A stretch of 64,000 nucleotides of DNA from Eutreptiella sp. 'Long Island Sound 2002'. Lineage: Eukaryota; Protista; Euglenida. A program made the translations under genes and the position numbers. Of this stretch, positions 3,731 through 59,425 are shown piece after piece. The stretch is taken from contig OZ038378.1 in the NCBI GenBank assembly GCA_964036045.1, positions 17,546,001 through 17,610,000 of the forward strand, in the 5' to 3' direction. Positions within the stretch are counted from its first letter, which is position 1, and each line of letters opens with the position of its first letter. Under the pieces are notes generated by a model. The model saw only the letters and a list, made by a program, of their open reading frames with translations. It did not search any database and was not told where the DNA came from.

Positions 3731-4639
3731 TAATGTTGGCACTCAAAAGCCTGTCCTCCAACCCTGGTCTCTCCCTGAATAAGGGACAGCCAGTGGTGTG
3801 GGAACCCATCGCAATGGGTCGGGGTTTTTTTTTTTTTAGCGTTAACACGTCCGGCACACTCCGTAGGGTCACTAGCACCTCGGGGTGGTCGCTCATGCAG
3901 TATGAGTTGGCTGTGCCCACCAGCCATTCTGTTGTGTGATCCACCGTTGCCTGGGTTTCCCACAGCCCCAGATTGTAAAAGACGCCTGCCCTCGGTAATC
4001 GCACACCTGGGGGGTTCGAGGGGACGCACAGCTGGGGGGGGGGGTCCGAGGGGTCAGGGCTTCGGTAACCCATAACCCTACCACTAAGGCCCCTTCCCGG
4101 CCCCAGAGCATCTGGGACTGTAAAAGATGCTTGCCCTCGTTAATTGCACAATCCCTAGCAGTCGTCGGGCCCAAGAGCGTCCAGGTCTATGAAAGACGCC
4201 TGCCCTCATCAATAGTACTGACAAAACACGACATCACACACACACAAAGGCATGCGCACAAAAATGAAGGCCAATACATAGAAACACACCATAGAAGTGA
4301 ATCGGGATACAACAACAACACAACAGAATCACACCACAAAGCCGAACATCCGCCCACATGTGTGCACACAACCCAGGCCGCAACAAACAGACATGCCTTT
4401 GGTCCATGGTGGTGTGGGGTGCCCCCCTCCCGTGAGCCAGGCACAGACCCCTGGAGGCCAGGCACCCTGCCCTCACCTTCATCACCCCACGAAGGCACGC
4501 CGAATGAGGGAGAAGACCCGGCCATGGGCAGCAGGATGCCCAACAACCCCTGAACCACCAGCTGGTGGTGCCCGTCCTGCCCCATTCAAGACAACCACAC
4601 CCACTGCAAACCCTGAAGCACCGGCACGTCCTGCCTCAG

Positions 4640-8500: not shown

Positions 8501-11500
8501 ATTTGCCCCAGCCCCCCCCCACCCCCCCCCAGTGCCCTGCACTACGCGGCTGCACTCAGGAGATGCTGCACTGGATCGTTCGGAACGGCGTGTGGCTGGA
8601 TTCCATTCAGAGCCAATTGCCGCAGTTTGTGACCGTTGCCTCGATGCAAATCTATGAGGACTGTAACTTTGAGAAGGTGAAGGAGCACTTGGTGGGGCCG
8701 CTGTGGAGAGTAATGCTGCTGGACGGCGCGACGCGGGACATACTGCCCATTAAGTTGAATGGGTATCAAGTGGTCATGCCTGTGCCTGTGCCTCATCGAG
8801 GACAAGACTGCAAGATAAAGGAAGAGGAGGTCTGCTGCCACCTCCGTGTCACGTCCTTTGCTCCTGTTCCCGCCGCCGCGCGTGTGTCTGCCACTGCCAG
8901 TCCCACGGCCCCCTCCTCGTGCCACTGCCGCTGCACCTGCACCTGCACCAGCGCTCATGTTCCCCGCATCCACCTGCTTCCCCCCTATCGTCGTCACCCT
9001 GAGCCCTCCCCCCCACGTGGTGAGTGGCCGGCCCTGGCCCCTGGCCCCTGGCCCTGCCCCTATTTCTGCTTCTGTCCCCTAGTTCTGCCCATGTCTCAGC
9101 CCCTACCTTTTCCCCTGCCCCTACTCCTGCACCTGCCCATCGTGACCCCAGTGCCCAGCCGTTCCCTATCCCACAGACATACAATGGCCAGCTCGCAACG
9201 CATCAGTGGCGGACGACCCCCCAAAGCAGTCTCAACGGCTTGTGCATGGTCGACAATCTGTTAGGCTGGGCCTCGGCGACCAATCCCGACGTCTTCCCCG
9301 GTGCCAACGACGATCCATTCCCTTGGCTTCTGCTGCTGGCCCTCCTTGTGGCGTTGCTTTTGTTACTGTGCTGTGGTATGCCCGACTGCAGTGCAATGCC
9401 GGCCGTGGGAGAGGGACAGGGGTCTCAGGACCTCAAGCAGTTTGGTATGACACCGTGACAAAGTGGGTACGTGCGGAACATAGGAGGTGGTGTGTAGGCG
9501 AGTTCATTGCGCCGAGGTCTTATCCCAAGAGCAAGAGGCTGGAAATCGAACGCACGACACAAACAATTGTCTGTGTGGAGCTTGGAACACGCGTCAGCAA
9601 ACGAGCGCAATGCGATTGTGCCTGCAACATAGAATGATGGTCACGCCCCTACCGCCACATATGAGCCTAACTGGGTCCCGCGTTGTTGGTTTCTCTTAGT
9701 TTCTCATTTTACTGCCGCCTCAGGCGCGGAGTGATGTGGTGCCACGTTGTGGGGTAAATGTAGTGCCCAGGGCTTTGCATCCGGTGTCTGTGGGGAACAC
9801 TTTTGTGCTACTTGGGTTTGCAGGTCTGGAGATTCTGATTGAAAACCCGAAGACAAAAACTGCGTGCGGCTGTCCAGGCCAATCTGTATTCCAGGAAACT
9901 AGGCAGGAGACAAATGCCCAGAGCCGCCTGCAGCCGGCCTTGGGACACTGCTGCATGTGGTGAGGACTTGAGCTTGGGTTTGGGTGGTCTGGGTTGCGCC
10001 TGCATACGGCATGGATGGAAGGTGGGCAACGTATGGGTGGGGCCTGGGTGGCTGCTGGGGATTGGGTGGGATGCGTCTCGGGCTTGGATGGGGCATGGGG
10101 GAGGGACCTCAATGGGGCATGAAGTTGAGTCTTGTCTAGGGCCTGGGTAAGGTATGGGTCGGCTGTCATTTGGGCATGGGTGGCGCTTGGATGTGGACGT
10201 TGATGGGTGATTGGTTGGGCATGGGTGAAGTCCCATGCCCGTCCTTGGCTTAACCCACCCTTTGCCCCGACAACTGCCTCACCCATGCACCACTCATAAG
10301 CGAAGCAAGCTTCACTCACGGCCCCACCCAAGCCGCACCCAAGCACCATTGGGTGTGGCTTATGGTACCCGATACAGCAATGTTTATGTAGCCATGTCAT
10401 TCCTCTCTACTGTAGGAGACCCCAATATGGCGGAGGTTATGTAGCCACATTATTCCTCTCCGCTCTGGGAGACCCTGATACAGCACAGGTTGCGTAGCCA
10501 CGTGAGGCCTATCCGCTTTGCGAGACCGCGCTGCTGCAGGGGCTTGTAGCCAGATCTGGGCTGGGGTTGGGTGTGGCACAGGTGGGTCTTGGGTGGGGTT
10601 CAAGTGGGGAATCTGTCGAGCACGAGCACGAGGCATAAATATGGGATTGGCAGATTGGGTGTGACCCGCGGGTGTGACCCTCCTTGAACCTTTTTCATAG
10701 AAGCACAAGCCCAGGCTGGCTGTGGCAGGTGCGCACACAGTGGGCACAGCCGTGCGAGACGTGCGCGACGGAGGGCGCGACAAGCATTCCGCTATCACCA
10801 ACAGTCCCCCTCCTGGCCCTCCTCCATCACCTCAACCGAAAAGCAGGTGACATACTGCACTGGTACACCGGTTGCACTACACGGCAGCCGAGCAGCGCTC
10901 GTGGGACCAGCCCCCGTTCAGGCACAAACCTGCCCGTCCCCCGTGAGACCTCATTGTGCCCTCAGGCCTGTGCCTCTGCCTGGCATTGAAAACCTGGAAG
11001 AGACATTTGGACCGGCAGAAGGCCTTGGACGCAAAGCTGCAGACGCTGGAACCTGAAGGCACAGTTGTGCAGGACTTAGTCCCGCCGAAAGTCTTGAGTG
11101 ACGACGATGACGTGTTTGGAGAGGCCGGATCGGCCACTGTGGGTGTGTGCTCATGGGAACTGGCATCGGGAATGGTCTCAGTGCTGCTTCTGGCGAAGGG
11201 TGACGAGCGGTAGGAATGGGAGGCGATCGGTGCAGTACTGCTACTGGCCGTTGCTATGCCGTGGCTGAGGTTGTCATTTTCGCTCTTTGTGTGTGACTAC
11301 TCTGTGCGTGTGCGTGTGCGTGTGCGTGTGCGTGTACGTGTACGTGTGCGTGGCGCAGCCCTGCACATGCCTGCACCACGTACCCTACGCAGGCCTACGA
11401 AGGGGCCTAAGGAGTCGTGACATCACCCCTGCAACACGCAGCCCCACGCGTCTGAGATGTCCGAGCGACACGCAAAACTTCAGGAGGTTGCTTTTGTGGG

Positions 11501-14500
11501 GCATCTGAAATGTGTCCTGTGGCTGGCTGCTCAACCCACGAAAAGTGTGAGCCAACCTGAGACAATGGACCGAGGGGTGGACCACCCCCACTGTTTGCCG
11601 ACCACGGGGATGCCATCAGGGCCATATCAGCGATGGGATTGCCTGCTCAGAGAGGCCAATGATCTCCAAGCATGAGCACTAGCCCGAGCACAAGCCATGC
11701 TGCCCCCCATCACCACACCAACCTCCTGTTTGTGGTTTCAGGGATGTATGGGACTTCCGCAATCATGACACAGAACCGAAAAGCCACTGCAGTCGCCATG
11801 AGAGGCACCCAAAGTGCCCAAGGTCTGATGCGGGTTGGGTTTAGGTTTGCGCTGTGACTGGGGCTGTGTTGTTGGGCAGAGCGGTGCCACCAGCCCCCGG
11901 GTGAAGCATACGCCAGAGCTGTGCCTTGGGCACGGTCAGAGCAACACGGAGGATCCTCTGCGAAAAGGCAACACACATGAATTCATTCAGATGCTTTCAT
12001 CAGCAATCTGTTCAACTCTTCAACCCCGCACTCAGCTGCGGCTGGTGTGAGCCCCGCCCGCTGCGAAGCTGCATTGTATTCCTGTGGTCAAGTAACGTCC
12101 AGAGCCCCAGGGTGGCCGGCTGTACCGGCCCATCGCCTCTACAACGGTCCGCCACCACGGTTGCCGGTTCCTTGAAGGTGGTGGACCGCTGGCTGCAGCG
12201 GGGTGCTGCTCCGGCACTGCACTCTTTCCTCCATCCCACCTCAATCCTGCCTCCAGTCCGCGGTTTTTCAAGGAGACAGGGACGGACTACCGCCCGGAGC
12301 ATGACCCGGGGGTCGGGAGTTGAGGTGGGAACCGCCAGAGCCGGCACCCGTGAACCCTGTGCGTTGAGAGAGCGGCGTGTAGGACTGAGGGGCCCCTGTG
12401 TCTTCCAGTCCACACTTCTTCTACCGCACATGTCCTGTTTTAGTGGTCCACGGTTTCGTCGCGCCGCGCCCGTCGACAGCGTACGCAGGTGTTTGTGCTC
12501 TTGTCTGTGCGCAGTGGGACGGTGCTGCTGTTGCGTATCGCTGCACCCAAAGCCCCTTGAACGTCATGTCGCTCAATCTGTTTGGCATGACCCCTTCCCG
12601 GGCCAGGCGTCACGCGAGCAAAAAAATCTTCCATGGTTTTTCTTGTTTGTTTTTCTAAACGCGTGAGTCACGCGAGCGCTCGTGTAACACACGGGGAAAA
12701 CGTTGTGAGTGTTTTTGCGCATGCAACAACGGAAAGCCATTCAAAAACATTTTTTCCCGTTGTCGGCGTTGGTCACAAACGGCGCTTTCCGCACTCTCGC
12801 CACTGTTTCATTGCAGTTGCAGATGTCGGACAGGCTCCTGTGCACCCCACAGACGATGTGCAATTCATGTCCGTGCTCGGCCCAAACCCTGTGGCCACAG
12901 AAATTCAGAAAGAATCCGTACACGGTATGCCACTCCGGCAGTGGGATCTCCGAAGGGGCAGGGGGAAGGGGGTCAATCGGGGTGTTTCCTTTTTCGCGCG
13001 ACTTTGGGTTTTACATAGCACACAACGCAGGTAACCGCCGGCGTTTGGTGCGGTTGGTGGTCAAGCGACGGTATTTGATGGTCCACTGACGGCGGTTGGC
13101 CTGTCACCTTCAACGCGGCGGGTGTTCTGGCGAGGCTCACTTGACCATTCATCAGCCACGACGCAAATCATTTTTGGGATGGAATTTTGTTGAAAACCTT
13201 TCGCTGATTCCCACGCAAAGTGATGGCGCTTCTCAGTTCTGGGTCCAGGTGATGCCCGGCGCCATGTCGGGAAGGGGTTCCGGATCTGCTCCATTGTCCA
13301 GGACGGGGACTGTGCCAAAGCACGGGGCCTGGACTGTGTAGGGACAGGGGTGACCTGGGCAGAGGGACAAACAATGCGGGTGCCTGATCGCCCGGTGTCA
13401 ACAACCCGAAGACACGAGTCACTGTGGAGTGTCGTGCTTTGTGGGGTGCGTGTTCGGGTGGCAGCCGACGCCGGTTGACCAGAAACCGAAAGGCAGTTTC
13501 TGGTCGTTCTGGGCATTCGAGTCCGGCAAAGTGCTTTTTCGTGGGCCTTAAGAACAGCCTTACGTCCGTTTGCTGCGGGGCATGGCAGTGCTTCGCTGCG
13601 AGTCCAGAGGTGTAGGGCCTGAGCAGGGGCGTTGGGAACTGTGCATTAGTGTGTGCTGGGGTCTGTGAAGAGGAGATCCACGTCTTGTAATGCCCAATTT
13701 AGAGGAAGTGATATGTCACATCAGGTTGGCCCCCGCACAAAGCGACATTGTGTCCAGACAAACCTTGGAGGGACACATCAGCCAACCCGAACCCAAAAAT
13801 AGAAATCACACGATCGTAATACCTCTTCTCTTGACGGGCGCATCTTTTTTCTGCACTGACAGATGCCACTGGTCCTGCTGGACCAAGACCCACCGATGAT
13901 GTTGACATGATGTCTGCCTTCGGCAAACCTCCAGCTGCGGACCTGATGGACAGTGCCCGAGGTATGACTGCTTCCTACTTTGCAGGGTACAAGGGTGCAT
14001 GGTCGCCAAAATCCTGGCGAGCAAGGCCGTTTGCCATACGTGAAGGAACATTTTTTACTATGGGGACGAAGATGGGAAAGTAGATTTGGCGCACAAACCA
14101 GGAACAGGGGGGCGGGGGGTGCAGGAAGTGTGATGAGTTGTACATGTTAATTACCGAGCTGGGTTTACCCTGTCGAGGTTTTACACCACCTTTTAGGGGC
14201 CAAGGCTGAGCAACACGTTTTAGCAAGCAGCAGCAGCAGCAAGCAGCAGCAGCAAGCAGCAGGCGCATAAAAAGTCCTTGCGACCACACCGCGGCTCAAA
14301 ACCGGCACCCAAGTAGCTCAAAACGACCGGGGAGCCAAGGCGCATCACCACAAACAACTTTGGTTGCATTTCGAGCCGTCTAGCCCGTTCTACGGCCGAT
14401 TTAGTGTCCAAAAATGGCCGTTTTTGGGCTGTTTTCGGCTGTTTTCAGGACGATCGTCCTGAAAGTTCAGGACGATCGCCGCTGCGCCAAGCAGGTGTTT

Positions 14501-17500: not shown

Positions 17501-18876
17501 TTTTCTCAACTGAGTTTGGTGCGTTTGCGTGATTCAGTATTTGGTGTGCACATGCATTGCTCTCGTGACACCTGCAGATGCCACTGGTCGACCACATAGA
17601 CCCACCGATGATGTTGACATGATGTCTGCCTTCGGCAAACCTCCAGCTGCGGACCTGATGGACGGTGCCCGAGGTATGACTGATCCATGCGTTGCGGGGT
17701 AGCGATGTGTGTGTTCAGGTGTTGTGTGCGTGAGTCGAGCACGTGTTTGTGACTGTGTGTGTCGCATTGTGTTGGTACCTCTGCTTCCTCCCCCGCATCC
17801 CAATGATCCCTCGGGCAAGAGACTGGCGGGCGACGGATGCCTCCCAGCCTCCCTGTCGCAAGCGGAGCCTTCACACGTGCGGTGGTGCACTAGTTCCTCA
17901 CCGTAGAGAGGGCCTCCGTAGGGGGAGGGCTGCGGGGCGCTGCGGGGGAGTGGGACGGTGTATCAGAGACGGGTGGTGAGGGATAGCGGGGCGTGACCCG
18001 ACCAGGCCTGGCCAGGGGTACAATCTCCGGGTGGGAAGAGTCCATGTGCGCAAGGAGCCAGCCTCCCACGCTCGCCTGGATGCAGGCGGGGTTGTGCCCG
18101 AGGGTGTCCAGCTCTGTGGCCCAGTCGCCCAGTGTACGGCTGACAGCATCCAGCCTGGTCTGGATCAACCCCCCTGCCGTGTCCACCAGGAATGCAGACG
18201 AGGAGAAGGGGCCGAACTGTCCGCTGCGAGCACAATCCCTGCATTGAAGGTGCCCACAAATGCAGCCTACAACCATGTCCCCCGGGAGGTTGCAGACAGA
18301 GCACGCCAGCGTCCAAGGGTGGGGCCGTCAATACAATCCTGATTTCCACGCAAGCCCCATGAGAGGGCCGAGAGTCACGCTACTTGACCCCGTACCGGTT
18401 GCAGGGCCTTGCGTACTGTGCGGTAGATGGGTACCTGGCCCAAGGTTGTAGTCCAGGGGTCATTGCGGGCTGCAGGTCCTGACCGGGGAGGGTGCACAAT
18501 TGACAATTAGGGACACCACCCACCCCTGGCGAAACAAGAGGGGGACAAGCACCTCGCTGCATGGGAGGCGGGGATCCCCCGATGGATAAGGTGCACGGTC
18601 CATGCACCACTGCTGTCGGTATCTACTGCCACGCGAGCCGCCGGGGCACACATTTGGTGCGTTTGCGTGATTCACTATTTGGTGTGCACATGCATTGCTC
18701 TCGTCACGTACGCAGATGCCACTGGTCCTGCTGGACCAAGACCACATAGACCCACCGATGATGTTGACATGATGTCTGCCTTCGGCAAACCTCCAGCTGC
18801 GGACCTGATGGACAGTGCCCGAGGTATGACTGATCCATGCGTTGCTGGGTAGCGATGTGTGTGTTCAGGTGCTCTA

Positions 18877-18925
<49 letters not shown>

Positions 18926-23367: not shown

Positions 23368-23408
<41 letters not shown>

Positions 23409-26400: not shown

Positions 26401-26451
26401 ATGACTGATCCATGCGTTGCCGGGTAGCGATGTGTGTGTTCAGGTGCTCTA

Positions 26452-26504
<53 letters not shown>

Positions 26505-28014: not shown

Positions 28015-28053
<39 letters not shown>

Positions 28054-29565: not shown

Positions 29566-29600
<35 letters not shown>

Positions 29601-31111: not shown

Positions 31112-31146
<35 letters not shown>

Positions 31147-49100: not shown

Positions 49101-52100
49101 GTTGGACGCCACGTCCACGCTTTGCAGTGCTGTGGAACTGCGCGTGCTGTTCCCTGTGGTGCCCTGGAGCGTGTTGTGTGTGTGTAGCGGCCAGTTGCAC
49201 TCATCACGGTCCATGTGCAGTCCCGAAGCAAGGTGCGGATGGTCCATCTGGACCGGGCGCTGGCATACCGCATGACGACGCCATGATGATGTCTGCATTC
49301 GGTCGAAATCCTCGTTCAGATCTGATGGACAGTGTTGTAGGTTTGAATGCCGCACGCTGCAGTGTGAACGGTGGTCTGATTTGTTGCGCGATGTCATACG
49401 TCTCATGCGAGACGCGTGTGCTTTGTTCACACTGTGCAAGGCCCAAGGGGCAGGGGCACATACACACAGGGCAAGGGCATACGGGGTAATAGCACATGCA
49501 TTTATTTGGTGGGGGCGATCAGCGCACGATAGTGAGTGGCGGGCGGCTGTGGATGGGCACAACTGTGCAAGTGGGTGCCATATGTGAGGTTGCCCTGTGC
49601 AGGACTGGTTGATGCAGATGGTTTGTGATATTGCATTGCGGGTCCGGTTCGGCGTAGTTGTAGATTGTGGGTCGCTTTGACGACCTCGTCATTGGTATTT
49701 CCACGTGGCGTGGTGTGTGTACAGGCCCCAGGCAAGGAGCCAATGGTCCAGGTGGCCTTGGAGCCGGCCGGACTCCTGCAGATGATGCTGACATGATGTC
49801 TGCGTTTGGCAAACCTCCCAATGCGGATCTGATGGACAGCAGTCGCGGTATGACCGGTTCATGCATTGTCGCCTGGTGGCGTGCAGGGGCTTGCGTGTGT
49901 GTGATTGCGGTTTTGCGAGTCATAGCGGAATGAGGAAGCATGGGGAATGGTTGATGCGTGATGCATCGGGCAGTGGTACAGATTGTCATGCTAGGGCGTG
50001 GTATGGGTTGTAGAATGGACACGGGGTGATGGGTTTTGATCTGCTTTCATTGACCAGGATGATGTCCCTGTGCGAGTGCGCTGGGCTTTGCATTTGTGTG
50101 TCGGAGTGACTATGCAGACTTGGTAGCGACGTGGCGTACGGGGTAGGGATGCATTTTGGTTCTGTGTGGGCAATCGGACAACGGTGGGGCGTGTACATTG
50201 GTGCACGTCAGCAGGCGCTGTAGGATGGCGACTGCGGTTATATGATTGTTTGATGTTGGACGCCACGTCCACGCTTTGCAGTGCTGTGGAACTGCGCGTG
50301 CAGTTCCCCGTGGTGCCCTGGAGCGTGTTGTGTGTGTGTAGCGGCCAGTTGCACTCATCACGGTCCATGTGCAGTCCCGAAGCAAGGTGCGGATGGTCCA
50401 TCTGGACCGGGCGCTGGCATACCGCATGACGACGCCATGATGATGTCTGCATTCGGTCGAAATCCTCTTGCGGATCTGATGGACAGTGTTGTAGGTTTGA
50501 ATGCCGCACGCTGCAGTGTGAACGGTGGTCTGATTTGTTGCGCGATGGCATACGTCTCATGCGAGACGCGTGTGCTTTGTTCACACTGTGCAAGGCCCAA
50601 GGGGCAGGGGCACATACACACAGGGCAAGGGCATACGGGGTAATAGCACGTGCATTTATTTGGTCCGTGGGCGATCAGTACACCAGCCTTCCTGATGCCG
50701 TGCTTTATTGCTTCCTCGCTACGTCTGCGTTTTTCACCATCACGTTGTATGCGGCTGTTGTTTCTTGTCGTCACCGCATGTTTTTTATTTGTATTCTCAC
50801 GAAATGCAACTCAGTGTCTCTGGCCAGAGTCACCGGCAGGCGTTAATTGCGGTTGTGCATGCCAGTCGTTGATTTCAATTTCCCACCGCAGTTGACGGTT
50901 GATTCTGTCTCAAACCTGCGGTGTAAAGGCTAGGCTCCCTATTTTGTTTTCTTTTGGACAACCGTCATAGACAAATTCCAGGGACAAGTGCCATGGAGGG
51001 CGTTCCGCTTTCTCTTATGGCCCTCCATCGTCCGCCGATTGATTTCAAGAGATTGGATCGTGTACAATGCACCTGCTCGCGGCCTCCGTCTCCGTACCAC
51101 CTCGTCTATGTGCAGGGCCAAGACAGGTGGACAGCGAGGCGGGTTCAGGCACTGATGCAGAGCTCATGAGGTCCTGTTTCATGGGCTCTCTGCCAAAGAT
51201 ACGCAGAGGTCTGAGGGGTGTGCGTGTACTGGTGCGGCTGGAGGGGCTGGGCGTGTTGCTCGTGTTCGGCACAAGGGCATACGCTGCCTGTGGTGGTTGA
51301 GGGGTTCGGTGCAGGGGAAGTGGGCATATTGGGCTCCTCATAGGACGAGGCTGGCATGAGATTACGGCGTCGTTGATGAAATATTCGAGGGCAAAGGGAT
51401 TTGTTTCATGATCAGGGGTACACGATCATTTGTACTCTCTGGGTACTTTCCACTGTGTTATGCACAGCACCGGTGGAACGGAAGCCGTCCCCGTCAGGCA
51501 TCCGCGAGGGCAGTCAACTGCCTCCTCAATTGATGTCGCACATCAGCCGGGACATCCCCAAGGCGGTCCATATGGATCTATGTATGACGCTGTCCCTCCC
51601 TCCCTCCCTCCCTCCCTCCCTCCCTCCCTCCCTCCCTCCCTCCCTCCCTCCCTCCCTCCCTCCCTCCCTCCCTCCCTCCCTCCCTCCCTCCCTTTTTCTC
51701 TCCCCGCGTGCGTGCGTGTGCGTGTGTGCACCCTCGGTGGGTTTTTTTGTGTGTTTGTGGCAACACGCATTCAAACATGGGCTCGCCACTAACCATCCAA
51801 TGTCATGCCTTTCACACACATGATGTGCATGCACCACCGCTGCCCTGCTGCCGCCATGGGCAGTGCCAATGCTGGTCATAAGCCCTGCAACACATGGTTT
51901 TGCTGCGCATTTTTGGCCGTGGTGACAACTGAAGAGGTAACCAAGTCGCTTTTATGGTTCTGGGTCAGTCCGAACTGACAGGACAATTTCGGGCAAACAC
52001 ATGGAATGCTGCACGCATAGTGTTTTGTTTGTGGCAGCCTGCTCAAGGCAGTGGATGCACAGGTTTTTTTTATGCCGTTGACTCTACAGAGTGACTCTAT

Positions 52101-55100
52101 GACATGATTTTAGGGTGGGGGGAATCGGACCCACCCGCCCTGTTACACCCATCACTGATGGGTGGCTGCTCTGAGGGCCTGGGTGAAGGGGTTCATGGGT
52201 TCATGGGTTTTCATGAGCGGTACGGTTTCGATTTTTCCACATATAATTTCTGTTCTTCTTGGTCGTTTGTCGGGTCAGCCAACGGGGTGCTGATGGCCAA
52301 AGATCTCGACGCGTTCTCCCGCTGTACAGATTCCGATGACCCTTCAGCAGTGCAGGAGGTCCAGCGGCACTCATATGACAGCACTGTGCAAGAGCTGTCT
52401 ATGATCGATGATCCTGATCTGGAAGCCACTATGATGGATAGTATGCCCCATGCCCCAGGCCACGCAATCCCTCGACCTGCCTGAGGGGCATGTGCGTTCA
52501 ATTGCTGGCATCACACCCTCTCGTGGCATTGCATTCTTTTTTACGGGACCCGAGGTCAATTTGCAACGAGGTCACAAGGCTCATCTGTCATAGCACATGA
52601 CGCCTGAACCAAAAGTCGATTTCGTGTCCTACTCCGATCCCCAGGGACACTGAACGGAACCGTGCTCTTGGTAAGCACCCTATACGTCCCACTCTTTTGT
52701 ATTTTGGCAGGAGCAGGGAGCATTCTGGCATCAGTAGAACCCATTGCACTACCAAATATCAGGCTGAGACGTGTTTGCCATTGTATGGGTCCTGTGCAGT
52801 GATCCTTCAAAGATGTCGTCCAGACGGTGCATACAAAGTTATTTCAGCCGTCGGGCGTGCTCGAGTATCCCCGGTGACCCCGTGAGCCGGAAGGGACGGA
52901 TTATGGTTCGCTGGTGCCTGGGGATGGCCCGGGTGTTCCGCCTCCATGGACGCTACAAGAGAGGTTTCTGGACCGTGAGAACACCGCTGGGGCCCAAATT
53001 ATCCCTCACAAAGGCCTGATGTCACATGTGCACAACGCCGGACGTGGCATGTGTCGGGGGCAGAGTGATTTTGAGTGATTTGTGTCCCACATTTGGTCTG
53101 GGTCGAGGCCTTTTATGTCTTTGCGGGGGGCCGCGAGTGGGTGACAGTGGGTGCAAACCGTCCTTCCCACTGGTCCTCAGTCGCTGTTGGACATCAGTCT
53201 ATCGAACAGGACTTGCAACTCTGCCCCAGCGCATGCAAACCCGTCACTCTGTTGGGCCGGCGGGTCATTGAGAGGTGTAAGCACTGTGGAAGAGGCCTGC
53301 CAACGTGCCTATCCGGCACCACTCACCGCCATAAGAGCCCGAGAGGCCACGCATAGCGTTCACAGGTGCGGGGTCTTCTTTGTCATTTTGACCCCCCCCC
53401 CCTCAATGTGCTTTGCATTCTGGATTCCCACCCAGGCAGGTGGATGCCCGCAGCAGTGCGGATGCCCCCAGCAGTGCGGATGCCTGCTTGTCATAGCAGA
53501 AGGTTCAAGGGCGAGAGGCCAATAGGCGCCGCCACAGGCTAACGGAGCCAACCACCAAGGCTTTGTGCCAAACCCCCCCTCAGTGTGCTGTTGAACCACT
53601 CACATCAGCTCTGCGGAGCACAAAACCATATGTCAAAGTATGAAACCTCTGTCTTTGTGCCAGCGATTTTCTTGTGCTGCGCCTTTAGAGACGTCGCTGG
53701 CCGCATCCCGCTGTGCATCACCGATGGGCATATCCCGCAGCACATCACCGGTTCCAGCTCCCCATTCATCATCTCTCGACCACGGTCCCAGCGAATCTAG
53801 AGCCGTATCGGGAGGTATGTGCCATGTCACGTTGTGCATCTGAGGTGCTCTTGTGCTGCTGTCCCTGCTCTGCCTGTGATGAGTGGCCATGGGCTGCAGC
53901 ATGCTCAATAAGAACGAGCCTGGCCAGGAACCTGATTCAATCAGCAAACAGAGTCACAGCCGCAACATCGCATTGTCCCGCACCGCCTCCATTACACTGC
54001 AGACGCCGGAAATGACACACGGGCTCGGCCGATTGAAGGAGGGTATCTACAGAGGCTGCGGGCCCTGCTGCCAGGTGTACCAGGTACCAGCTCTCATCAC
54101 CTATGAGACTTCCGTACCCCGATGCTCTGCTGTATTTTTAGTGTGGCATTGTGTGCGACATATCTCTCGGGGACACCGGATTTCATGCCAACGCGGAGCG
54201 TTTTCAGGGGTTGGTGCCTTTCTTGCCTCATTTGTGCCCGCTGACTGTCCCAAAGGGGGGGGTATGTGGGGTATATTCGAAAAGCCCTTGAAAAGGGCTG
54301 TTTGGAACACCCTGGGTTCGCATGCTGTACTAGCGACATGTTTGAGAGTTTCGTCCGTTTTGGACAGCATGTGTGCAGCCTGCTGCCTCTCTTTGTCAAC
54401 AGGCAGCTACTATGTCTGTATGCAAATTCACGCAACGTGCTGTAGCGTCCCCGGACGCACCACAAAAACCTTTGCTGCGCAAAAGGGCTCGCTCTGGGGG
54501 TGCAGAGTGGGTGCGTGTGATTCGGGGTCCTGCCAAGCAAACCAAGAAGCCTCGTACAGGCGGTTCACAGCAACCTGCATGCGACCACGAGGAGCACCAG
54601 ATTTTTTCCACTTCTGAGGCCGCTGCTTTTGCAGCCCAGTTTTGGGATAAAAAGACTCACCCCGCCTGTTTTGGTCAGAGATGACAAAATGAAATGGTTG
54701 GATTTTGGCAAGACACCGGACCCTGAAAACCTTGAGGCCCATTCCGGTTTTGCCTGGATGAAATCAGGGTACAGTGAGGCCGTTGCATGGCGCAAGGTCC
54801 GGCTGACCAAACAGCGAAATGCGCTCTGTGTGTCCTTCCGTTTACAGCTCTTTGTGCAAAACTGTGACCACCTACCCCCCCCCCCCCAACCCATACATTT
54901 CTGAAACGGCCTTTTCTCACAGATTTCAAAAAGTATACACATACTCCCCCCCCCTATGGGACGAAATTTTAGTGCATTGGACCAAAACGTGAGAAAACCC
55001 TGAAAAATTGCGAATTTGCTCCGTGTTGGCACGTTCTGAATGTCCCCGAGAGATATGGACGGAGGAACTTTATGCATTTCTGTGGTTCCTGCGGTCTCAT

Positions 55101-58100
55101 CTACGCGTGGGCAAGCATGATGTGCGTTGCAGGGCAAGGGTCAGTGTGTTAGGGCTCAGCCTCCAGCTTTTCACGGCCGTAGGCCAAGCCGCAGTTGAGC
55201 TCAATTCGTCTCAGGTTAACGTTGTTGATGTTGTTTGAGAGATGTTATTTGCTGCAGGGCCGCGTCTGTGCTGGGTACGAGTTGTGGCACAGGCCGTATT
55301 GCAACGTTTCGGGGAGGTTTTCAGCGTGCGCTGCTTGTGAGTTGTTCAGCCGCGACGTGTGGCCATTGCACAGGCTGCAGGGGGTATTCAGAGCACTGGC
55401 TCGGTAGTCTCTTGGGATTTGTATGGGAGTTGCATAGGAGACGTATGTGGGCACAGCAAAGCCCCAACGGGCGCAAGGGAGTTTGCATTCACAACGCCTG
55501 TCTACCAAACTCTGCATCACGAAAGCCAAGGGGAGGCATACGAGCTGCCACTTAATGAGTTGTACGGGAGTCGCAGGGGAGTTGCACGAGGGTTGCATAC
55601 AAGTTGCATAGCGACATCTGCGAGTTGCGTGGGGGTTGTATGGGAGTTGCAAGGTGGTGGTCTGGGAGCATTGTGGAGCCGGATGGGGGGGGGGTGGTGG
55701 CTGTTGAAGGGGATTTGCAGTGGTGTTGTATGGGAACACGGAAAGCAGCATAGGATTTGCATCGGAGTGGCCTGACAGAGGCATGGCGCATGTGTAGAGG
55801 AGAGTCCATGGGAGTTGCAATCGTACATCATGTCAGAGGACGCACAAACCGCGGAGCTGGGCGGCATCTTTAAGGATTGGGACAGAATTTATACGAACAT
55901 GATTTGTGGCAACATATCCCTTTCTCCGGACACCCCCCCCCACACACACACACGAACCAGGGTGCGAATGCTTGTCAAAGAGCTTTCTGCGCGTCTTTCG
56001 CGCCCCGTTGAATGTTCACAAACCCGCTACTGGCACTGCCCTGCTTGTCGTTAGGGAGAAAACGCAGCAAAGGAGTACCCCCAGAGAGCGCAGCTGCCAG
56101 CCCACGCACGCCTTCAAATGTGGTCCCCGTGCCTCCCGGATTCAGTATCGCAGATGAACTGTGTATGTTCAGTGGCAAGGTTGAGGGCGCTGGGAGGGTA
56201 GTGGTGGTGGTAGTGGGGGTGTGCACGATCAGGGAGGGCCCGACCACCGTTTTGTTGGGTGTTTGGTGGTTCTTGTGGGGGGTCATCGTGTGCACAGTGC
56301 AGATGCAGTTTGTTTCGAAGGGGATCTCATCTCGTGTAACGCTCTGCTGCGGCTGTCATTTTGGTGAGTCGGTTGCGGCTCATGAGTCTGATTTACGCAG
56401 CCCCCTCCCCTCCATACGGCCAGGGCGTTGCAACACGGCAATCGTTGTGGCGAATGTCTTTTGGATCCGCCGTTGTTGTTGTGATGAGTTTGGCTTTGCA
56501 TTTGTGACCTTTCGTTTGGAGGATGTTTTTGAGTCTGCCCCATAGCGCCAGGTCCCTGCCAGCCCCCGTGTCCACACGTGCAATGTGTTAAGCCTCCATC
56601 CCCTACGCCGTGTGGTGACCTACGTGCCCGCGTCCAGTAGCACATTGGGTCCCGCCGGGGGCACGTGATGGCCGTCCTCTTTCCGCCCTCTCGCGCCCAC
56701 TCTTCAGGGTCTGACGCCGATTTGCCACCGCCTCCGGCACCAAGTCCGGTGCTGATGACGCACGTCGGAGGCCACGCGATGCCGGACGCCACAGTTATGG
56801 ATTTCACACGCCGCGGCCCCGCAGGTGCCATGTGCGTGCCATGGCAGCGCAACGCTGCGATCGGGCCGTACCGCGGACGAGAGACCCCCGGAGAACCCCC
56901 GAATGGAGGGGACGCGCATGGACAATGGCCTCCTCGGTTTGGTGGCTGGCGGGCGGTAGCCAGCGTCCCTATCTCCGGCTGCCACATACGCTCATGCACT
57001 TGTTTTGTGTTGTGCTTCTTCGCTGTGTTTTTCGGGTTGTGTACGGAAGAGTCAGCGTTGTATTTTGTGACCCCCCCGGGGGGCGTTCCCCGTTCCCAAG
57101 GATTCGTGTATGACGGAGGCGCAACAGTGCAGGCGGTGCGTGACAGGGGCCCCCACTGTCTGACGCCGGGAGGGCGGCCCCTGACCCGGACTGGCTCATT
57201 CGCTCGGGACCCGGGCCCGAAGGGAAGGAAAGGACCGCGCGGCGTGTGCAGGATGACGACGGGAGGGAGGGGACCTCCGGGGCATCGCCAACCCATGCCT
57301 CGGGGCACGAAGGGAGTTCACATGACGGGCCAATGCGGCACAGCAGCGGGCTCTCGGGGGTCGGTGTTGTGCTGTGCTGGTGTCAGGCACTGCCACAGGG
57401 AGGCCAGTGGGGTCTGGTCAAGAGGCCATTCCCCTCCCCATCGCGCTCGCCCTTCCCCATGCCCCCGCTGTCCAGGGTCCGGCTCCGAATCTCCGGCACA
57501 AGAGCCGGTGCTAATGACGCAGGTCAGAGGCCACACGATACCGGACGCCACCATTATGGATTTCGCACGCCACCACCCCGCAGGTGCCTGCTTGTCTGCC
57601 ATTGCAGGACAATGTCTGGACAGCAACGACACCCCCATTTACTATGGGACACCACATGCTGTGGCTTGTTGATGATGCCGCCTTTGATACCTCCCCCCCC
57701 CTGCTCTCCCCCGTGTGTGCCAGTGTGGCGGTGTAGAATTGCGGTCGGTGCACATTGCAACACTTTGTCCCTGCGTTTTGTGGATCCGGACTCTAGAAAT
57801 ATGTGTCCAGCGTATCTCCCACAATGCGTAGGTCTGTGCTCTGTGATCATCCCGCGTGTATGGCTGCTTTTCTTCTGCGGCACCCTGTGATCATTGCCTC
57901 GGTGCATGGGGGACGAGGGGGAGGGGGCGCACACGAGGCGCACTGTTGCAGGTGGAGGAGGGGGGGCTGCTGCAAACAAAGCGCATCACGGGGGAGATGG
58001 CTTTGGCGCTGAGGAGGCGCACAAGGGATTTGGCGCTGGGGAGGCGTGTAGTGGCCCCTGAACAGCCCGCGACCCAACCAGCCACCCGCCCCACAAGTGA

Positions 58101-59425
58101 AGACGGGGCTTCGCTTGCAAACAGTTGGACACCCCACGTTCAAGGGCCCCCGGAGGTGCATCGGACTGGACGTCCTGCCGGCCGTCATCCAACAGGTCTG
58201 ACTGCAGTGCCTGTTCATGGGGCCTTGGTCGGCGTGCCCACGACTGTTGCTCCACACCAGCTCCCCCTCGCCACCGCACGGGACCTTGGGAGGCGGGTGC
58301 GACTGCCAGGGACGTGGACATGGAGTTGTCCATGGACCACTGCATGCCCACAGACCAGTGCCATGGGCATGTGCCACGGAGGGCGGACTGCTCCGTTCAT
58401 CCCCCAATGTACAGGACCCCCGTGCTTTTCATGCCCTGCGAACATCGTGTGTCTGTCATCCGTCGCCGGTTTGGTTTGCGCTGGGGGGGGGGGGATTGCG
58501 GTCCGCAATTTACCGCAATTTACCGCAATTTACCGCAATTTTACCGCAATTTTTCAGTGATGCCTCTATTCAAAAATTTCATTTTTCCCCTGAAGAAAAT
58601 TCTTTCCCTACCTTCGCTGTTACTGGGCACACTGTACGTGTTTGTGTTCTCATCTGTCCTGCATTTCATTTGTGTGGCAGGACGCTTTCCGTTTTTGTGT
58701 TCCCAAAATGTCATCCACTCCTGGAGACAGTCCTTCTGGCAATGGTAAAAGGCCAGTGAAACGTGGCAAAGGACAGGGCACGCTATGCCACACAGATTTC
58801 GCGTTTGCATGGTGTGGGGACTGTCTCTGTGGAGCGGTTCTTTTCGTTTTGCAAAGATACTGACACAGACCAGAGGTATTCAATGAGCGACAATGCCCAT
58901 CGTGTGGCTTTCATGGCCCATTGTAATGGTGACAGGGAAGGATGGTTGGATTAGCTGCTTGTGCTGAAAGCTTTGGTGCACCGTGCATGCTATGTGCCGA
59001 AAGGCTCACTATCCTACCAATTGGGTGCATAATTGGTCAAAAAAACCTTTTTGCAAAAAGTCCTGTGCTCCACCGCTGCTCATGGCTGGCATGGAGTCTG
59101 GGGACCGAAAGGAAATGTACCGCAATTTTTACCGCAATTTTACCGCAATTTACCGCAATTTTACCGCAATTTGTTTAGGCTTGGGGGACCGCAATCCCCC
59201 CCAGGTTTGCGTGGACAATCGGTCAACCACCAAATGCTCCCCGTCGTCCGCCGATCGCCGTTCATATCAAGCGATTGGAAGGGTCCTCCCCCTGCGAGGC
59301 CCCCGCCTCCGCACCACCTCGTGTACGCACAGGGGCCTGGCAGTCTGACAGCGAGGCGGGCTCAGACACTGATGCAGACCTCATGAGGTCCTGCTTCATG
59401 AGCTCTCAGCCAAAGATACAGAGAG
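4640..59425 (+). CDS. Giant multi-exon gene (partial): predicted single-pass membrane protein with Ser-Pro stalk ectodomain and a very long repetitive tail built from tandem phase-1 exons
   Basis: Consecutive exons have compatible phases (1-1, 0-0, 0-0, 1-1, then all 1-1) and GT-AG boundaries. TM segment WLLLLALLVALLLLLCCGLCLCLAL is followed by KTWKRHLDRQK. Start codon and last exon were not found. Confidence 0.75.
4912..5340 (+). repeat. Coding low-complexity (Ser-Pro)n repeat
   Basis: CCCTCC/CTCTCC hexamer runs translating as PSPSPSLSPSLSP... Confidence 0.9.
6243..6352 (+). CDS. Ectodomain exon GQLCYTMCTVTCYKDELGANYSRIAPLFPSEIGQGGL
   Basis: CCACAG| acceptor (phase 1) and CTG|GTACAC donor (phase 0); links the 5591 and 8560 exons in frame. 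Confidence 0.6.
8560..8829 (+). CDS. Ectodomain exon EMLHWIVRNG...DCKIKEEE (90 aa)
   Basis: CTCAG| acceptor and GAG|GTCTGC donor, phase 0-0; globular-protein-like composition. Confidence 0.7.
9177..9375 (+). CDS. Exon encoding the start of the transmembrane helix (TYNGQL...DPFPWLLLLALLVALLLLLCC)
   Basis: CCACAG| acceptor (phase 0) and TGTG|GTATGC donor (phase 1); strongly hydrophobic run. Confidence 0.75.
10966..11142 (+). CDS. Juxtamembrane exon GLCLCLALKTWKRHLDRQK...DDDDVFGEAGSATV
   Basis: CCTCAG| acceptor and GTGG|GTGTGT donor, 177 nt, phase 1-1; completes the TM helix and supplies positive-inside residues. Confidence 0.75.
13774..13849 (-). promoter_or_regulatory. Antisense copy of intronic element X abutting the acceptor of the first exon A (candidate RNA-pairing splicing element)
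   Basis: 58/76 positions match the reverse complement of X (e.g. 23409-23484) by manual alignment. Confidence 0.45.
13863..13961 (+). CDS. Repeat exon A, 99-nt variant (DATGPAGPRPTDDVDMMSAFGKPPAADLMDSAR)
   Basis: Pyrimidine tract + GACAG| acceptor; CGAG|GTATGA donor; phase 1-1. Confidence 0.75.
14292..14657. repeat. Small foldback-like element with the palindrome TCAGGACGATCGTCCTGA twice and inverted CGGCTCAAAA/TTTTGAGCCG
   Basis: Seen directly; no TSD identified. Confidence 0.45.
17429..17504 (-). promoter_or_regulatory. Second antisense copy of element X, ~70 nt upstream of exon A 17578
   Basis: Shares AGCCAA..CCAAAAA.AG.AACAAA..GAT.GTGATATCT..TCTCTTGACGG with the reverse complement of X. 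Confidence 0.4.
17578..17673 (+). CDS. Repeat exon A, 96-nt variant
   Basis: CTGCAG| and |GTATGA; in-frame 12-nt deletion relative to the 108-nt copies. Confidence 0.75.
18716..18823 (+). CDS. Repeat exon A (108 nt)
   Basis: GCAG|...|GTATGA, phase 1-1. Confidence 0.75.
20278..20385 (+). CDS. Repeat exon A (108 nt)
   Basis: GCAG|...|GTATGA, phase 1-1. Confidence 0.75.
20722..20904 (+). other. Candidate exon D ending in an in-frame TGA immediately before the donor (terminal, poison or pseudo-exon)
   Basis: GTCGCAG| acceptor, 183 nt, phase 1-1; contains WMSRL and LMD motifs like its neighbours; ends CTC TGA G|GTCTGG. Confidence 0.45.
20973..21134 (+). CDS. Repeat exon C (DGPHDDDAGDDHDEDWMSRM...DGVDMMSAFGRPPAADLMDSAR)
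   Basis: TTCAG| and CGAG|GTGCGC, 162 nt, phase 1-1. Confidence 0.75.
23207..23314 (+). CDS. Repeat exon A
   Basis: 108 nt, phase 1-1, GT-AG. Confidence 0.75.
24760..24867 (+). CDS. Repeat exon A
   Basis: 108 nt, phase 1-1, GT-AG. Confidence 0.75.
26291..26398 (+). CDS. Repeat exon A
   Basis: 108 nt, phase 1-1, GT-AG. Confidence 0.75.
27854..27961 (+). CDS. Repeat exon A
   Basis: 108 nt, phase 1-1, GT-AG. Confidence 0.75.
29405..29512 (+). CDS. Repeat exon A
   Basis: 108 nt, phase 1-1, GT-AG. Confidence 0.75.
30951..31058 (+). CDS. Repeat exon A
   Basis: 108 nt, phase 1-1, GT-AG. Confidence 0.75.
32498..32605 (+). CDS. Repeat exon A
   Basis: 108 nt, phase 1-1, GT-AG. Confidence 0.75.
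32944..33126 (+). other. Second copy of candidate stop-containing exon D
   Basis: Near-identical to 20722-20904, including TGA G|GTCTGG. Confidence 0.45.
33195..33356 (+). CDS. Repeat exon C, second copy
   Basis: Same 54-codon phase 1-1 exon as 20973-21134. Confidence 0.75.
33925..34044 (+). CDS. Repeat exon B1 (VPKQGADGPSGPGAGMPHDDAMMMSAFGRNPLADLMDSVV)
   Basis: GTGCAG| and GTAG|GTTTGA, 120 nt, phase 1-1. Confidence 0.75.
34429..34551 (+). CDS. Repeat exon B2 (GPRQGANGPGGLGAGRTPADDADMMSAFGKPPNADLMDSNR)
   Basis: GTACAG| and CGCG|GTATGA, 123 nt, phase 1-1. Confidence 0.75.
35079..35198 (+). CDS. Repeat exon B1
   Basis: 120 nt, phase 1-1. Confidence 0.7.
35583..35705 (+). CDS. Repeat exon B2
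   Basis: 123 nt, phase 1-1. Confidence 0.7.
36233..36352 (+). CDS. Repeat exon B1
   Basis: 120 nt, phase 1-1. Confidence 0.7.
36737..36859 (+). CDS. Repeat exon B2
   Basis: 123 nt, phase 1-1. Confidence 0.7.
37386..37505 (+). CDS. Repeat exon B1
   Basis: 120 nt, phase 1-1. Confidence 0.7.
37890..38012 (+). CDS. Repeat exon B2
   Basis: 123 nt, phase 1-1. Confidence 0.7.
38547..38666 (+). CDS. Repeat exon B1
   Basis: 120 nt, phase 1-1. Confidence 0.7.
39051..39173 (+). CDS. Repeat exon B2
   Basis: 123 nt, phase 1-1. Confidence 0.7.
39700..39819 (+). CDS. Repeat exon B1
   Basis: 120 nt, phase 1-1. Confidence 0.7.
40204..40326 (+). CDS. Repeat exon B2
   Basis: 123 nt, phase 1-1. Confidence 0.7.
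40856..40975 (+). CDS. Repeat exon B1
   Basis: 120 nt, phase 1-1. Confidence 0.7.
41360..41482 (+). CDS. Repeat exon B2
   Basis: 123 nt, phase 1-1. Confidence 0.7.
42010..42129 (+). CDS. Repeat exon B1
   Basis: 120 nt, phase 1-1. Confidence 0.7.
42514..42636 (+). CDS. Repeat exon B2
   Basis: 123 nt, phase 1-1. Confidence 0.7.
43164..43283 (+). CDS. Repeat exon B1
   Basis: 120 nt, phase 1-1; the following intron holds the Sola insertion. Confidence 0.7.
43527..46117 (-). mobile_element. Sola-type (Sola1-like) DNA transposon, 2591 bp
   Basis: Imperfect ~36-bp TIRs beginning CTCTCGGG(G)ACA. ATAT TSD at 43523-43526 and 46118-46121; sister repeat units show the empty site GCCATATGTGAGG. An AWWT TSD is typical of Sola1. 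Confidence 0.85.
43812..45870 (-). CDS. Sola-like DDD transposase (~660 aa), with one 81-nt intron and one frame disruption
   Basis: Motifs KDTCAEC, VLDYSKAMSLLKLP, WPEYVAGKGFNE, HTDGC and KGHSYNLCD. In-frame GT-AG intron at 44899-44979; frame change near 44448-44452. Confidence 0.75.
46264..46386 (+). CDS. Repeat exon B2
   Basis: 123 nt, phase 1-1. Confidence 0.7.
46914..47033 (+). CDS. Repeat exon B1
   Basis: 120 nt, phase 1-1. Confidence 0.7.
47418..47540 (+). CDS. Repeat exon B2
   Basis: 123 nt, phase 1-1. Confidence 0.7.
48067..48186 (+). CDS. Repeat exon B1
   Basis: 120 nt, phase 1-1. Confidence 0.7.
48571..48693 (+). CDS. Repeat exon B2
   Basis: 123 nt, phase 1-1. Confidence 0.7.
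49221..49340 (+). CDS. Repeat exon B1
   Basis: 120 nt, phase 1-1. Confidence 0.7.
49725..49847 (+). CDS. Repeat exon B2
   Basis: 123 nt, phase 1-1. Confidence 0.7.
50375..50494 (+). CDS. Repeat exon B1 (last copy)
   Basis: 120 nt, phase 1-1. Confidence 0.7.
51116..51208 (+). CDS. Exon E1 (GPRQVDSEAGSGTDAELMRSCFMGSLPKIRR)
   Basis: GTGCAG| and AGAG|GTCTGA, 93 nt, phase 1-1; paralog of 59333-59425. Confidence 0.65.
51593..51692 (+). repeat. (TCCC)n microsatellite
   Basis: Perfect tetranucleotide run. Confidence 0.95.
52330..52440 (+). CDS. Exon F (DSDDPSAVQEVQRHSYDSTVQELSMIDDPDLEATMMD)
   Basis: GTACAG| acceptor (an alternative in-frame acceptor gives start 52279); GATA|GTATGC donor, phase 1. 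Confidence 0.5.
53689..53814 (+). CDS. Exon H, Ser-rich (ETSLAASRCASPMGISRSTSPVPAPHSSSLDHGPSESRAVSG)
   Basis: CTTTAG| and GGAG|GTATGT, 126 nt, phase 1-1. Confidence 0.5.
54164..55052 (+). mobile_element. Internally deleted non-autonomous derivative of the same Sola family (889 bp)
   Basis: Same TIRs, ATAT TSD at 54160-54163 and 55053-55056. The N-terminal coding remnant (...FWDKKTHP) is fused to the C-terminal remnant (PVLVRDDKMKWLDFG...). Confidence 0.85.
56708..56824 (+). CDS. Exon G1 (GSDADLPPPPAPSPVLMTHVGGHAMPDATVMDFTRRGPA)
   Basis: CTTCAG| and GCAG|GTGCCA, 117 nt, phase 1-1. Confidence 0.65.
57476..57583 (+). CDS. Exon G2 (GSGSESPAQEPVLMTQVRGHTIPDATIMDFARHHPA)
   Basis: GTCCAG| and GCAG|GTGCCT, 108 nt, phase 1-1; paralog of G1. 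Confidence 0.65.
58481..59204 (+). mobile_element. Non-autonomous hAT-derived element
   Basis: TIR CTGGGGGGG(G)nATTGCGGTCC / GGACCGCAATCCCCCCCAG; 7-8 bp TSD (G)GTTTGCG; subterminal TTACCGCAATT tandem repeats at both ends. Internal remnant SVERFFSFCKDTDTDQRYSMS resembles the hAT C-terminal dimerisation motif. Confidence 0.7.
59333..59425 (+). CDS. Exon E2 (GAWQSDSEAGSDTDADLMRSCFMSSQPKIQR)
   Basis: GCACAG| and AGAG|GTCTGC, 93 nt, phase 1-1; paralog of E1 including its upstream intron flank. Confidence 0.65.

Follow-up and report, generated by a model that had tools for sequence, protein, structure and literature searches.

Near-identical exon-plus-intron units that probably encode a long, repeat-bearing cytoplasmic tail of a euglenid membrane protein

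Titin (in its PEVK region), nebulin and the collagens are encoded by many short symmetric exons, each carrying one repeat and derived by exon duplication, and these exons are mostly old and diverged. The human LPA gene carries a 5.6-kb kringle IV type 2 (KIV-2) unit that is present in 1-40 units per allele (PMC11462820), and the repeat can make up as much as 70% of the coding sequence (PMC11201333). The Dscam1 clusters consist of mutually exclusive exons that encode different variants of one immunoglobulin half-domain (PMC4835542). Here we describe a 64,000-nucleotide (nt) stretch of Eutreptiella sp. 'Long Island Sound 2002' (assembly GCA_964036045.1, contig OZ038378.1, forward-strand positions 17,546,001 to 17,610,000; hereafter the window), in which DNA with the appearance of satellite arrays holds a series of short exons. 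We consider it likely that these exons belong to one expressed, plus-strand protein-coding gene whose product carries a long multivalent cytoplasmic tail, and that the tail has grown by tandem duplication of exon-plus-intron units.

By analogy, this architecture would work like LPA KIV-2, and it resembles that of the repeat-per-exon genes. As in LPA, near-identical in-frame units of exons plus introns are repeated so that each added copy would lengthen the protein, the repeat accounts for most of the coding sequence, one of the units (the B unit below) likewise has two exons, and successive units are spliced into mRNA (A to A, B1 to B2 and B2 to B1, in two sequencing runs). In contrast to LPA, the repeat is a short linear motif in a disordered cytoplasmic tail rather than a folded extracellular kringle, the units measure 1.15 and 1.55 kb, and one gene holds three array types. 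Unlike the exons of titin PEVK, nebulin and the collagens, most units here are 96-99% identical, introns included; a paralog with diverged introns (L004, below) is closer to that classical pattern. Dscam1 shares with this locus tandem exons of the same phase and similar length in one gene, but here adjacent copies are spliced together and their peptides are nearly identical.

Translation and a profile search of the window identified 38 copies of the peptide motif D-D-x-D-MMSAFG-(K/R)-x-P-x-ADLMDS, all on the plus strand; the same profile found nothing comparable on the minus strand within the window. The exons carrying it are intact in 38 of 38 cases, each preceded by (c/t)AG, followed by GT and a multiple of 3 in length, with two nucleotides of a split codon at the start and one at the end, which is phase 1 at both ends. 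Together they sum to 4527 nt, or 1509 amino acids (aa), with zero stops and zero frameshifts, and the copies of each type encode 2-5 nearly identical peptides. The types are as follows.

A exons, plus strand: nine of 108 nt, one of 99 nt and one of 96 nt, one motif each
C exons, plus strand: two of 162 nt, one motif each
B1 exons, plus strand: thirteen of 120 nt, one motif each
B2 exons, plus strand: twelve of 123 nt, one motif each

Seven further phase-1 AG/GT exons bring the total to 45 exons and approximately 1778 aa, and the exons and their phase can be regarded as shown. The original prediction, made from the DNA letters, had placed about 45 phase-1-symmetric exons with lengths in multiples of 3 inside apparent satellites; we recovered 38 motif exons and seven others at or near the positions predicted. 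A length of 126 nt, which it had listed, was found for none of the phase-1 AG/GT exons of the window. In order along the window, the motif exons and the segments among them are:

12817..12924, plus strand: degenerate motif exon of 108 nt, phase 1, AG/GT, encoding TDDVQFMSVLGPNPVATE; hidden Markov model match with E 3.5e-4
13863-13961 (99 nt), 17578-17673 (96 nt), 18716-18823 (108 nt) and 20278-20385 (108 nt), plus strand: first A block, four A exons of the same type as the RNA-supported A exon at 32498-32605
20722..20904, plus strand: segment D1, 183 nt, AG/GT, whose phase-1 reading ends in a stop; candidate exon only
20973..21134, plus strand: exon C1, 162 nt, an acidic segment and then the motif
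23207, 24760, 26291, 27854, 29405, 30951 and 32498 (starts), ending at 32605, plus strand: second A block, seven 108-nt A exons, the last of them covered by RNA
32944..33126, plus strand: segment D2, a copy of D1 with an identical terminal stop
33195..33356, plus strand: exon C2, 162 nt, peptide identical to that of C1
33925..43283, plus strand: first part of the B array, in which nine 120-nt B1 exons alternate with eight of the 123-nt B2 type
43284..46263, plus strand: enlarged B1-to-B2 intron, 2980 nt against the usual 384, with ~2.6 kb of unrelated DNA inserted
46264..50494, plus strand: second part of the B array, with four exons of each type and a final B1 at 50375-50494

The use of these exons in RNA was followed over 32400-34960 only, an interval that runs from the last A exon through D2 and C2 to one B unit. 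Informative RNA-type data came from two runs: X11, an estuary metatranscriptome, and X13, a 2015 run with another organism label. Their contigs cover only 32496-32605, 33924-34045 and 34427-34550, and intron depth is zero. Within these contigs an A donor is joined to an A acceptor (the path "goes back 108"), a B1 donor is joined to a B2 acceptor (34042/44 to 34427/29, skipping 384 nt bounded by GT..AG), and a B2 donor leads back to a B1 acceptor (34550/51 to 33924/25). Three types of splice junction are thereby demonstrated, and spliced use of the predicted AG/GT sites was found for A, B1 and B2. On a single-unit reference, linear splicing from one identical unit to the next would appear as just such joints that run "back"; back-splicing could in principle also produce them but need not be invoked. 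Majority-copy variants (I not M, S not N) are seen in the contigs, unlike in the first B unit, and a codon that varies between L and R differs between X11 and X13, so that both variants are represented; transcripts therefore come from more than one copy, beyond the first. C2 and D2 have zero contig depth in X11 and X13, which is uninformative because single-copy exons are expected at approximately 1/10 of the array depth.

Exons of the gene are also present in other estuary metatranscriptomes (X1, X2 and X12, as well as X11, where identity is 95-100%). Estuarine water therefore harbours the Eutreptiella source organism, or a very near relative of it, in an active state.

Relatives of the gene place the motif in membrane proteins. 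The exon-peptide profile, run against 1.84 billion representative proteins, gave 22 matches, and those that were traced are euglenid or come from one assembly. The most complete comparison is offered by P0003, a 2193-aa product of a 7.5-kb Joint Genome Institute (JGI) contig that we interpret as a transcript. Its order is two VWA domains, a PAN module (sub-threshold only in Pfam), Ser-Pro (SP)-rich stalks, a conserved juxtamembrane region, a transmembrane (TM) helix followed by RRRK, and a 660-aa tail with about 17 motif copies in series (DAQFMSAFGRTPDATLMDS, DAHMLSALRRDHPGDAVLMD and similar). A second motif protein, P0002, is from Eutreptiella braarudii (MMETSP0810). Three loci of one European Nucleotide Archive (ENA) metagenome assembly, ERZ25074135, supplied genomic counterparts, here called L003, L004 and L005.

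The three loci differ in gene structure. L003 (ctg6973, 3405-13615) is intronless and encodes an ectodomain, a TM helix and a 37-aa (111-nt) repeat in more than 57 copies, in a reading frame of ~3400 codons that is uninterrupted save for a single frame break, at 10001. L003 may have originated by retro-processing and undergone its in-exon expansion afterwards. L004 (ctg8543, 2900-20500) has at least 25 one-motif exons in 20 kb, phase 1 and almost all 114 nt, with cag|CC acceptors, GAG|gt donors, diverged peptides and introns of 130-1810 nt. L004 is an older, non-homogenised form of the same exon-array design, of which the window shows the most recently amplified form. L005 is a genomic copy of the P0003 gene: when the P0003 mRNA was mapped onto it, two exons were recovered within 20 kb, the consecutive mRNA stretches lying 9.9 kb apart with the break at a motif boundary. 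The one-motif exons of L004 and the motif-boundary break in L005 together mark the placing of a single motif in each phase-1 exon as an old trait of the family. The intronless L003 shows that the family's product is a repeat tail of great length without interruption.

The 9.9-kb intron of L005 (10200-19871, minus strand), between two motif exons, itself contains long minus-strand open reading frames (ORFs) of 1897, 434, 505 and 312 aa with no Pfam match on record, which may be a large inserted element.

The family traits recur in the window. The conserved juxtamembrane ectodomain and the TM helix followed by basic residues are present, with 40-78% identity to P0003 1167-1518, and the tail pattern [DE]xxΦMSxΦ...P..A[DE]ΦMD[ST] is found as 38 strong copies plus variants. 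These comparisons establish the family architecture, in which paralogs reach the same repeat tail either by exon arrays or by an intronless in-exon repeat; on sequence grounds, the family appears to consist of unnamed, euglenid-restricted membrane receptors. The original prediction knew of no described family that fitted, and neither Pfam, the Protein Data Bank (PDB) nor the literature yielded one, even as unnamed euglenid homologs came to light. What is new here is the receptor family, its motif, and its exon-array and intronless versions side by side. Diverged one-motif exons, fresh exon-plus-intron units and an intronless in-exon repeat form a natural comparison, useful for the interplay of repeats, introns and retro-processing in euglenid genomes.

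The motif is under purifying selection, which is seen between exon types: over 22 core codons compared among the A, C, B1 and B2 types, pS (the proportion of synonymous differences) is 0.44-0.76 versus a pN (nonsynonymous) of 0.04-0.24, and 16 residues are invariant. Both halves of the motif follow D-A-x-Φ-M-(S/D)-x-Φ, and exons E, G and H are variants of that pattern. These observations bear on whether the arrays are coding at all. At first sight they are two macrosatellites with units 96-99% identical, whose within-array exon and intron variability is not significantly different, as might be found in non-coding satellite or transposon-derived DNA in which the AG/GT sites and open segments are incidental and any product is non-coding RNA. 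Such an account is already contradicted by RNA coverage that is confined to exons and shows GT..AG joints. Near-saturated synonymous change beside residues that are invariant between exon types, a minus strand without the motif, and the motif's presence in the TM protein tails of P0003, L003, L004 and Eutreptiella braarudii also speak against it, and we find it scarcely credible.

The original prediction had offered two outcomes, a repeat tail of about 1,800 aa or a large combinatorial family of isoforms. In the latter, Dscam-like combinatorial or mutually exclusive splicing would let each mRNA pick a subset of cassettes, yielding an isoform family or a regulated number of motifs. Every exon is phase-1 symmetric, so any subset would stay in frame; rare skipped junctions could escape the RNA contigs; and the two D segments, with their terminal stops, could serve as exit points. 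The RNA, however, joins A to A and B1-B2-B1, and mutual exclusion forbids such joints. With only 2-5 near-identical peptides per type, choice among copies changes the number of motifs and not their kind. The A:B contig depth ratios of 0.92 and 0.75 are near the genomic copy ratio, which is weak evidence in the same direction. Moreover, the more than 57 repeats of the intronless L003 cannot be skipped, and the P0003 mRNA carries its motifs in series. Isoform choice is therefore improbable as the main use of the arrays, and of the two outcomes it is the long repeat tail that is favoured, by adjacent copies joined in RNA, by more than 57 repeats in a single ORF in L003 and by about 17 in series in P0003.

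The repeat units responsible for this tail dominate the region studied as two macrosatellite-like arrays on a GC-rich eukaryotic background. A repeat search and self-BLAST placed an A unit of ~1550 nt, with one exon per unit, at 17.5-20.5 kb and 23-32.6 kb, and a B unit of 1154 nt, in 13 copies with two exons per unit, at 33.6-43.5 kb and 46.2-50.6 kb. With periods above 500 nt, both arrays escaped Tandem Repeats Finder. The introns of the B array measure 384 nt and 526-534 nt, those of the A array ~1.44 kb (1423-1455 nt in the second A block). An A-D-C end block occurs twice, at 20.4-21.4 kb and 32.6-33.6 kb, and D1 and D2 each sit just before a C exon. Besides the enlarged B1-to-B2 intron, in which the frame at 45106-45675 had no Pfam match, a second enlarged array intron (21135-23206, 2072 nt) contains unrelated DNA; both are probably insertions. 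Approximately 35 kb of apparent satellite DNA represents the larger part of the coding sequence, and an annotation that masks repeats would probably drop it.

Array units are 96-99% identical with their introns included, so the copies are young or homogenised, through recent amplification or homogenisation. Variable columns among units amount to 2-5%, in exons and introns alike within arrays, which leaves selection visible only between exon types and across paralogs; indels among units are confined to introns. Because the units are phase 1 and their coding segments multiples of 3, unequal crossing-over alters repeat number while the frame is kept.

Copy number could be gauged from two runs, X3 and X7, that cover exons and introns alike, as genomic DNA would. 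In X3, array depth is ~5.5 times that of the D2-C2 block, which itself has two copies, giving ~11 copies; this is a rough figure, as depth is not copy number, and it is roughly compatible with the assembled copy numbers. X7, which carries a second organism label, contains a complete B unit, in which 13 differences were counted over 1152 nt. Such data allow us to weigh the proposal that the gene is real and its arrays expanded only very recently, with neutral or slightly harmful effect, or are in part an assembly artefact, a few motifs being sufficient. Units that are 96-99% identical, arrays without exon-specific constraint and two introns that carry inserted DNA would all fit. Set against this, high repeat numbers recur independently in different gene structures (~17 in P0003, at least 25 in L004 and more than 57 in L003), 38 of 38 copies are intact, DNA-run depth fits about 11 copies of each unit, and the full B unit recurs at ~99% identity under the second organism label of X7. 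A dispensable or artefactual expansion is thus very improbable.

Upstream of the arrays, homology to P0003 identified exons of the ectodomain and of the membrane anchor.

4646..5623, plus strand: ectodomain exon inside the open frame 4508-5764, 40-41% identical to P0003 1167-1341 by tblastn; ends undefined
6242..6352, plus strand: ectodomain exon with the Cys-rich segment CYTMCTVTCYKDEL, 78% identical to P0003 1331-1367; ends approximate
8560..8832, plus strand: juxtamembrane ectodomain exon, 71% identical to P0003 1368-1458 and ~70% by eye to the intronless L003
9177..9375, plus strand: TM exon, 199 nt, AG/GT, phase 0 at its start and phase 1 at its end, encoding the first half of the TM helix
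10966..11142, plus strand: exon J, 177 nt, phase 1 at both ends (donor chosen by rule), encoding the second half of the TM helix, the basic stop-transfer segment KTWKRHLDRQK and an acidic stretch

An SP-rich stalk lies at ~4980-5340, its SP repeats encoded by (CCCCTC)n/(TCCCCC)n tracts. The region around the TM exon (9159-9380) is 49% identical to P0003 1441-1518 by tblastn. Since the upstream exons align to P0003 1167-1518, the gene would continue upstream of the window, where its start probably lies and where any counterpart of the two VWA domains of P0003 would be expected.

The TM helix is split between two exons: 9177-9375 ends in ...LLLLLCC plus G, and 10966-11142 continues with GC-LCLCLALKTWKRHLDRQK. 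The join, read as LLCCG-LCLCLALK, runs collinearly with P0003 and with L003, where the sequence is uninterrupted (LLCCCGLCLWLALR / LLLLCCCGLCLWLALRASKKHKDKQK), and by this alignment L003 confirms that the TM exon would be followed by the one at 10966. The TM exon ends in phase 1, as predicted. The basic residues after the TM helix, together with the extracellular-type N-terminal domains of the relatives, would place the repeats in the cytoplasm. Spliced RNA contigs, the resemblance that both the upstream exons and the split TM helix bear to their homologs in P0003 and L003, and the KTWKRHLDRQK segment support the earlier proposal that the exons form the cytoplasmic tail of one membrane protein.

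From these exons and their relatives, the product would be a type-I membrane protein with a single TM helix and then a long, mostly disordered cytoplasmic tail. Its ectodomain would be as in the relatives, with VWA domains, a PAN-like module, an SP-rich stalk and the conserved juxtamembrane domain. Ectodomain features of P0003 fall nearest to REJ/GPS clusters of a protein feature atlas, some of them of Euglenozoa (feature score 0.80), a lead that neither Pfam nor a structural model confirmed: REJ (PF02010) and GPS (PF01825) had no Pfam match even at E 10. A large modular ectodomain before the TM helix is a likeness to REJ/GPS receptors such as polycystin-1 and sea-urchin REJ, whereas one TM helix and no PLAT domain set the euglenid proteins apart. 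A homologous-protein search with the P0003 ectodomain returned the query itself only, its SP-rich words having probably swamped the candidates. Pfam gave no match for the tail, the ectodomain exons of the window or ten other ORFs, and JGI metagenomes, scanned once with the juxtamembrane exon and once with the motif profile, gave no match and hence no transcript contig of the gene itself.

The tail itself would be assembled from about 45 phase-1-symmetric exons, 38 of which add one motif of ~22 residues each: an acidic cluster, MMSAFG, a Pro turn and ADLMDS, with Gly/Pro/Arg-rich linkers separating the motifs. In a single-sequence AlphaFold2 (AF2) model of P0003 1500-1760, the TM helix is followed by two short helices per motif, (D)AQFMSAF and DATLMDSV, with a predicted local distance difference test score (pLDDT) of 65-73, and the linkers between motifs are of low confidence. 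The motif of the window may likewise form two short amphipathic helices, a prediction of low confidence drawn from the relative. The arrays would have arisen by tandem duplication of whole exon-plus-intron units, and the exons would be spliced consecutively via ordinary GT-AG introns, the main mRNA presumably including all copies.

Built in this manner, the tail could act as a multivalent docking scaffold, in which tens of identical short linear motifs would recruit many copies of one cytosolic partner, and repeat number would set the valency of the scaffold or its reach under the plasma membrane. Disordered tails of the AP180/epsin type are multivalent motif scaffolds. Look-alikes of the tail in the atlas, matched by features, include CsoS2, EspF and fibronectin-binding repeats; like the scaffolds CsoS2, EspF and FnBPA, the tail bears tens of short conserved motifs on flexible linkers, but it has no sequence relationship to them (0.54-0.64, a lead only) and its array is anchored to a membrane receptor. 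A more specific version, which we put forward tentatively and hold to be rather unlikely, is a length-tunable multivalent tether: repeat number, tuned in the course of evolution by unequal crossing-over and possibly within the cell by regulated exon skipping, would determine the number of partner copies that the receptor engages, or which pellicle structure beneath the membrane it engages. If true, the family would be an undescribed euglenid adhesion or signalling system in which the same tail is reached by two routes.

Known motifs with a superficial resemblance were compared by position. Resemblances to acidic-dileucine (DxxLL) and clathrin-box motifs do not hold for all copies. FG-nucleoporin repeats were rejected, as FG is replaced by LR, FS, FA or IR in the family while the Φ-M-S-x-Φ and Φ-M-D positions are kept. 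FFAT and phospho-FFAT motifs combine an acidic tract with a position 2 that is aromatic, a position 4 occupied by D or S/T and a small residue (Ala) at position 5 (PMC7610837, PMC7705450). In the euglenid motif, position 2 is Met or Leu in most copies and position 5, A here, is E/Q/T/K/D in L004, P0002 and P0003, while AF2 predicts a helix and not an extended strand. FFAT-type binding to VAP, as in a tether of the endoplasmic reticulum to the plasma membrane, was rejected by inspection, positions 2 and 5 not being conserved across the family. With no Pfam, PDB or literature record, the motif is a concrete bait for finding the partner.

Several points weigh against a single gene with a functional multivalent tail. 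That the TM exon and the arrays belong to one gene is suggested by homology, on which their link in Eutreptiella rests, and the true last exon was not found in the window, where the final exon, E2, still ends at a GT donor. RNA support is restricted to A, B1 and B2; the exons at 10966 and 12817, exons C and E to H, and the candidate D segments are called from sequence. The RNA contigs are circular de Bruijn paths that drop rare junctions, and they show the joining of adjacent identical copies, not the inclusion of all 38. Within arrays, exon and intron variability showed no significant difference, and selection is not evidenced there. On the protein side, the AF2 model of the juxtamembrane ectodomain (pLDDT 38) was unusable and left a helices-then-strands layout unconfirmed. 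The motif matched no Pfam family and, in a PDB profile search, no chain at E 10; a literature search for MMSAFG, MMSEFG and MLSAFG found no paper, and the euglenid and VWA searches returned nothing relevant. The atlas look-alikes of the tail are generic disordered repeat scaffolds at scores of 0.54-0.64, and its function is something we infer.

Downstream of the B array lie exons E1, G, H and E2 and the candidate exon F.

51116..51208, plus strand: exon E1, 93 nt, phase 1, with the half-motif DAELMRSCF
52330..52440, plus strand: candidate exon F, 111 nt, AG/GT, phase 1, with the motif-like peptide ELSMIDDPDLEATMMD; the weakest of the set
56708..56824, plus strand: exon G, 117 nt, with the variant motif PVLMTHVGGHAMPDATVMDF, resembling distal motifs of P0003
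57476..57583, plus strand: exon H, 108 nt, with the variant motif PVLMTQVRGHTIPDATIMDF
59333..59425, plus strand: exon E2, 93 nt, phase 1, ending at a GT donor

E1 and E2 are 79.6% identical over 186 nt in a conserved block centred on the exon, and their flanks differ; G and H are 83% identical over the exon only, with diverged flanks.

Minor repeats also occur in the window. Short tandem repeats at 197-384 (84-nt unit) and 10367-10527 (53-nt unit) have the core TTATGTAGCCAC in common and are possibly a dispersed element. A perfect (TCCC)25 microsatellite occupies 51593-51693, and short repeats of the CCGCAATTTTA type lie on either side of the E2 region, at 58503-58552 and 59114-59172.

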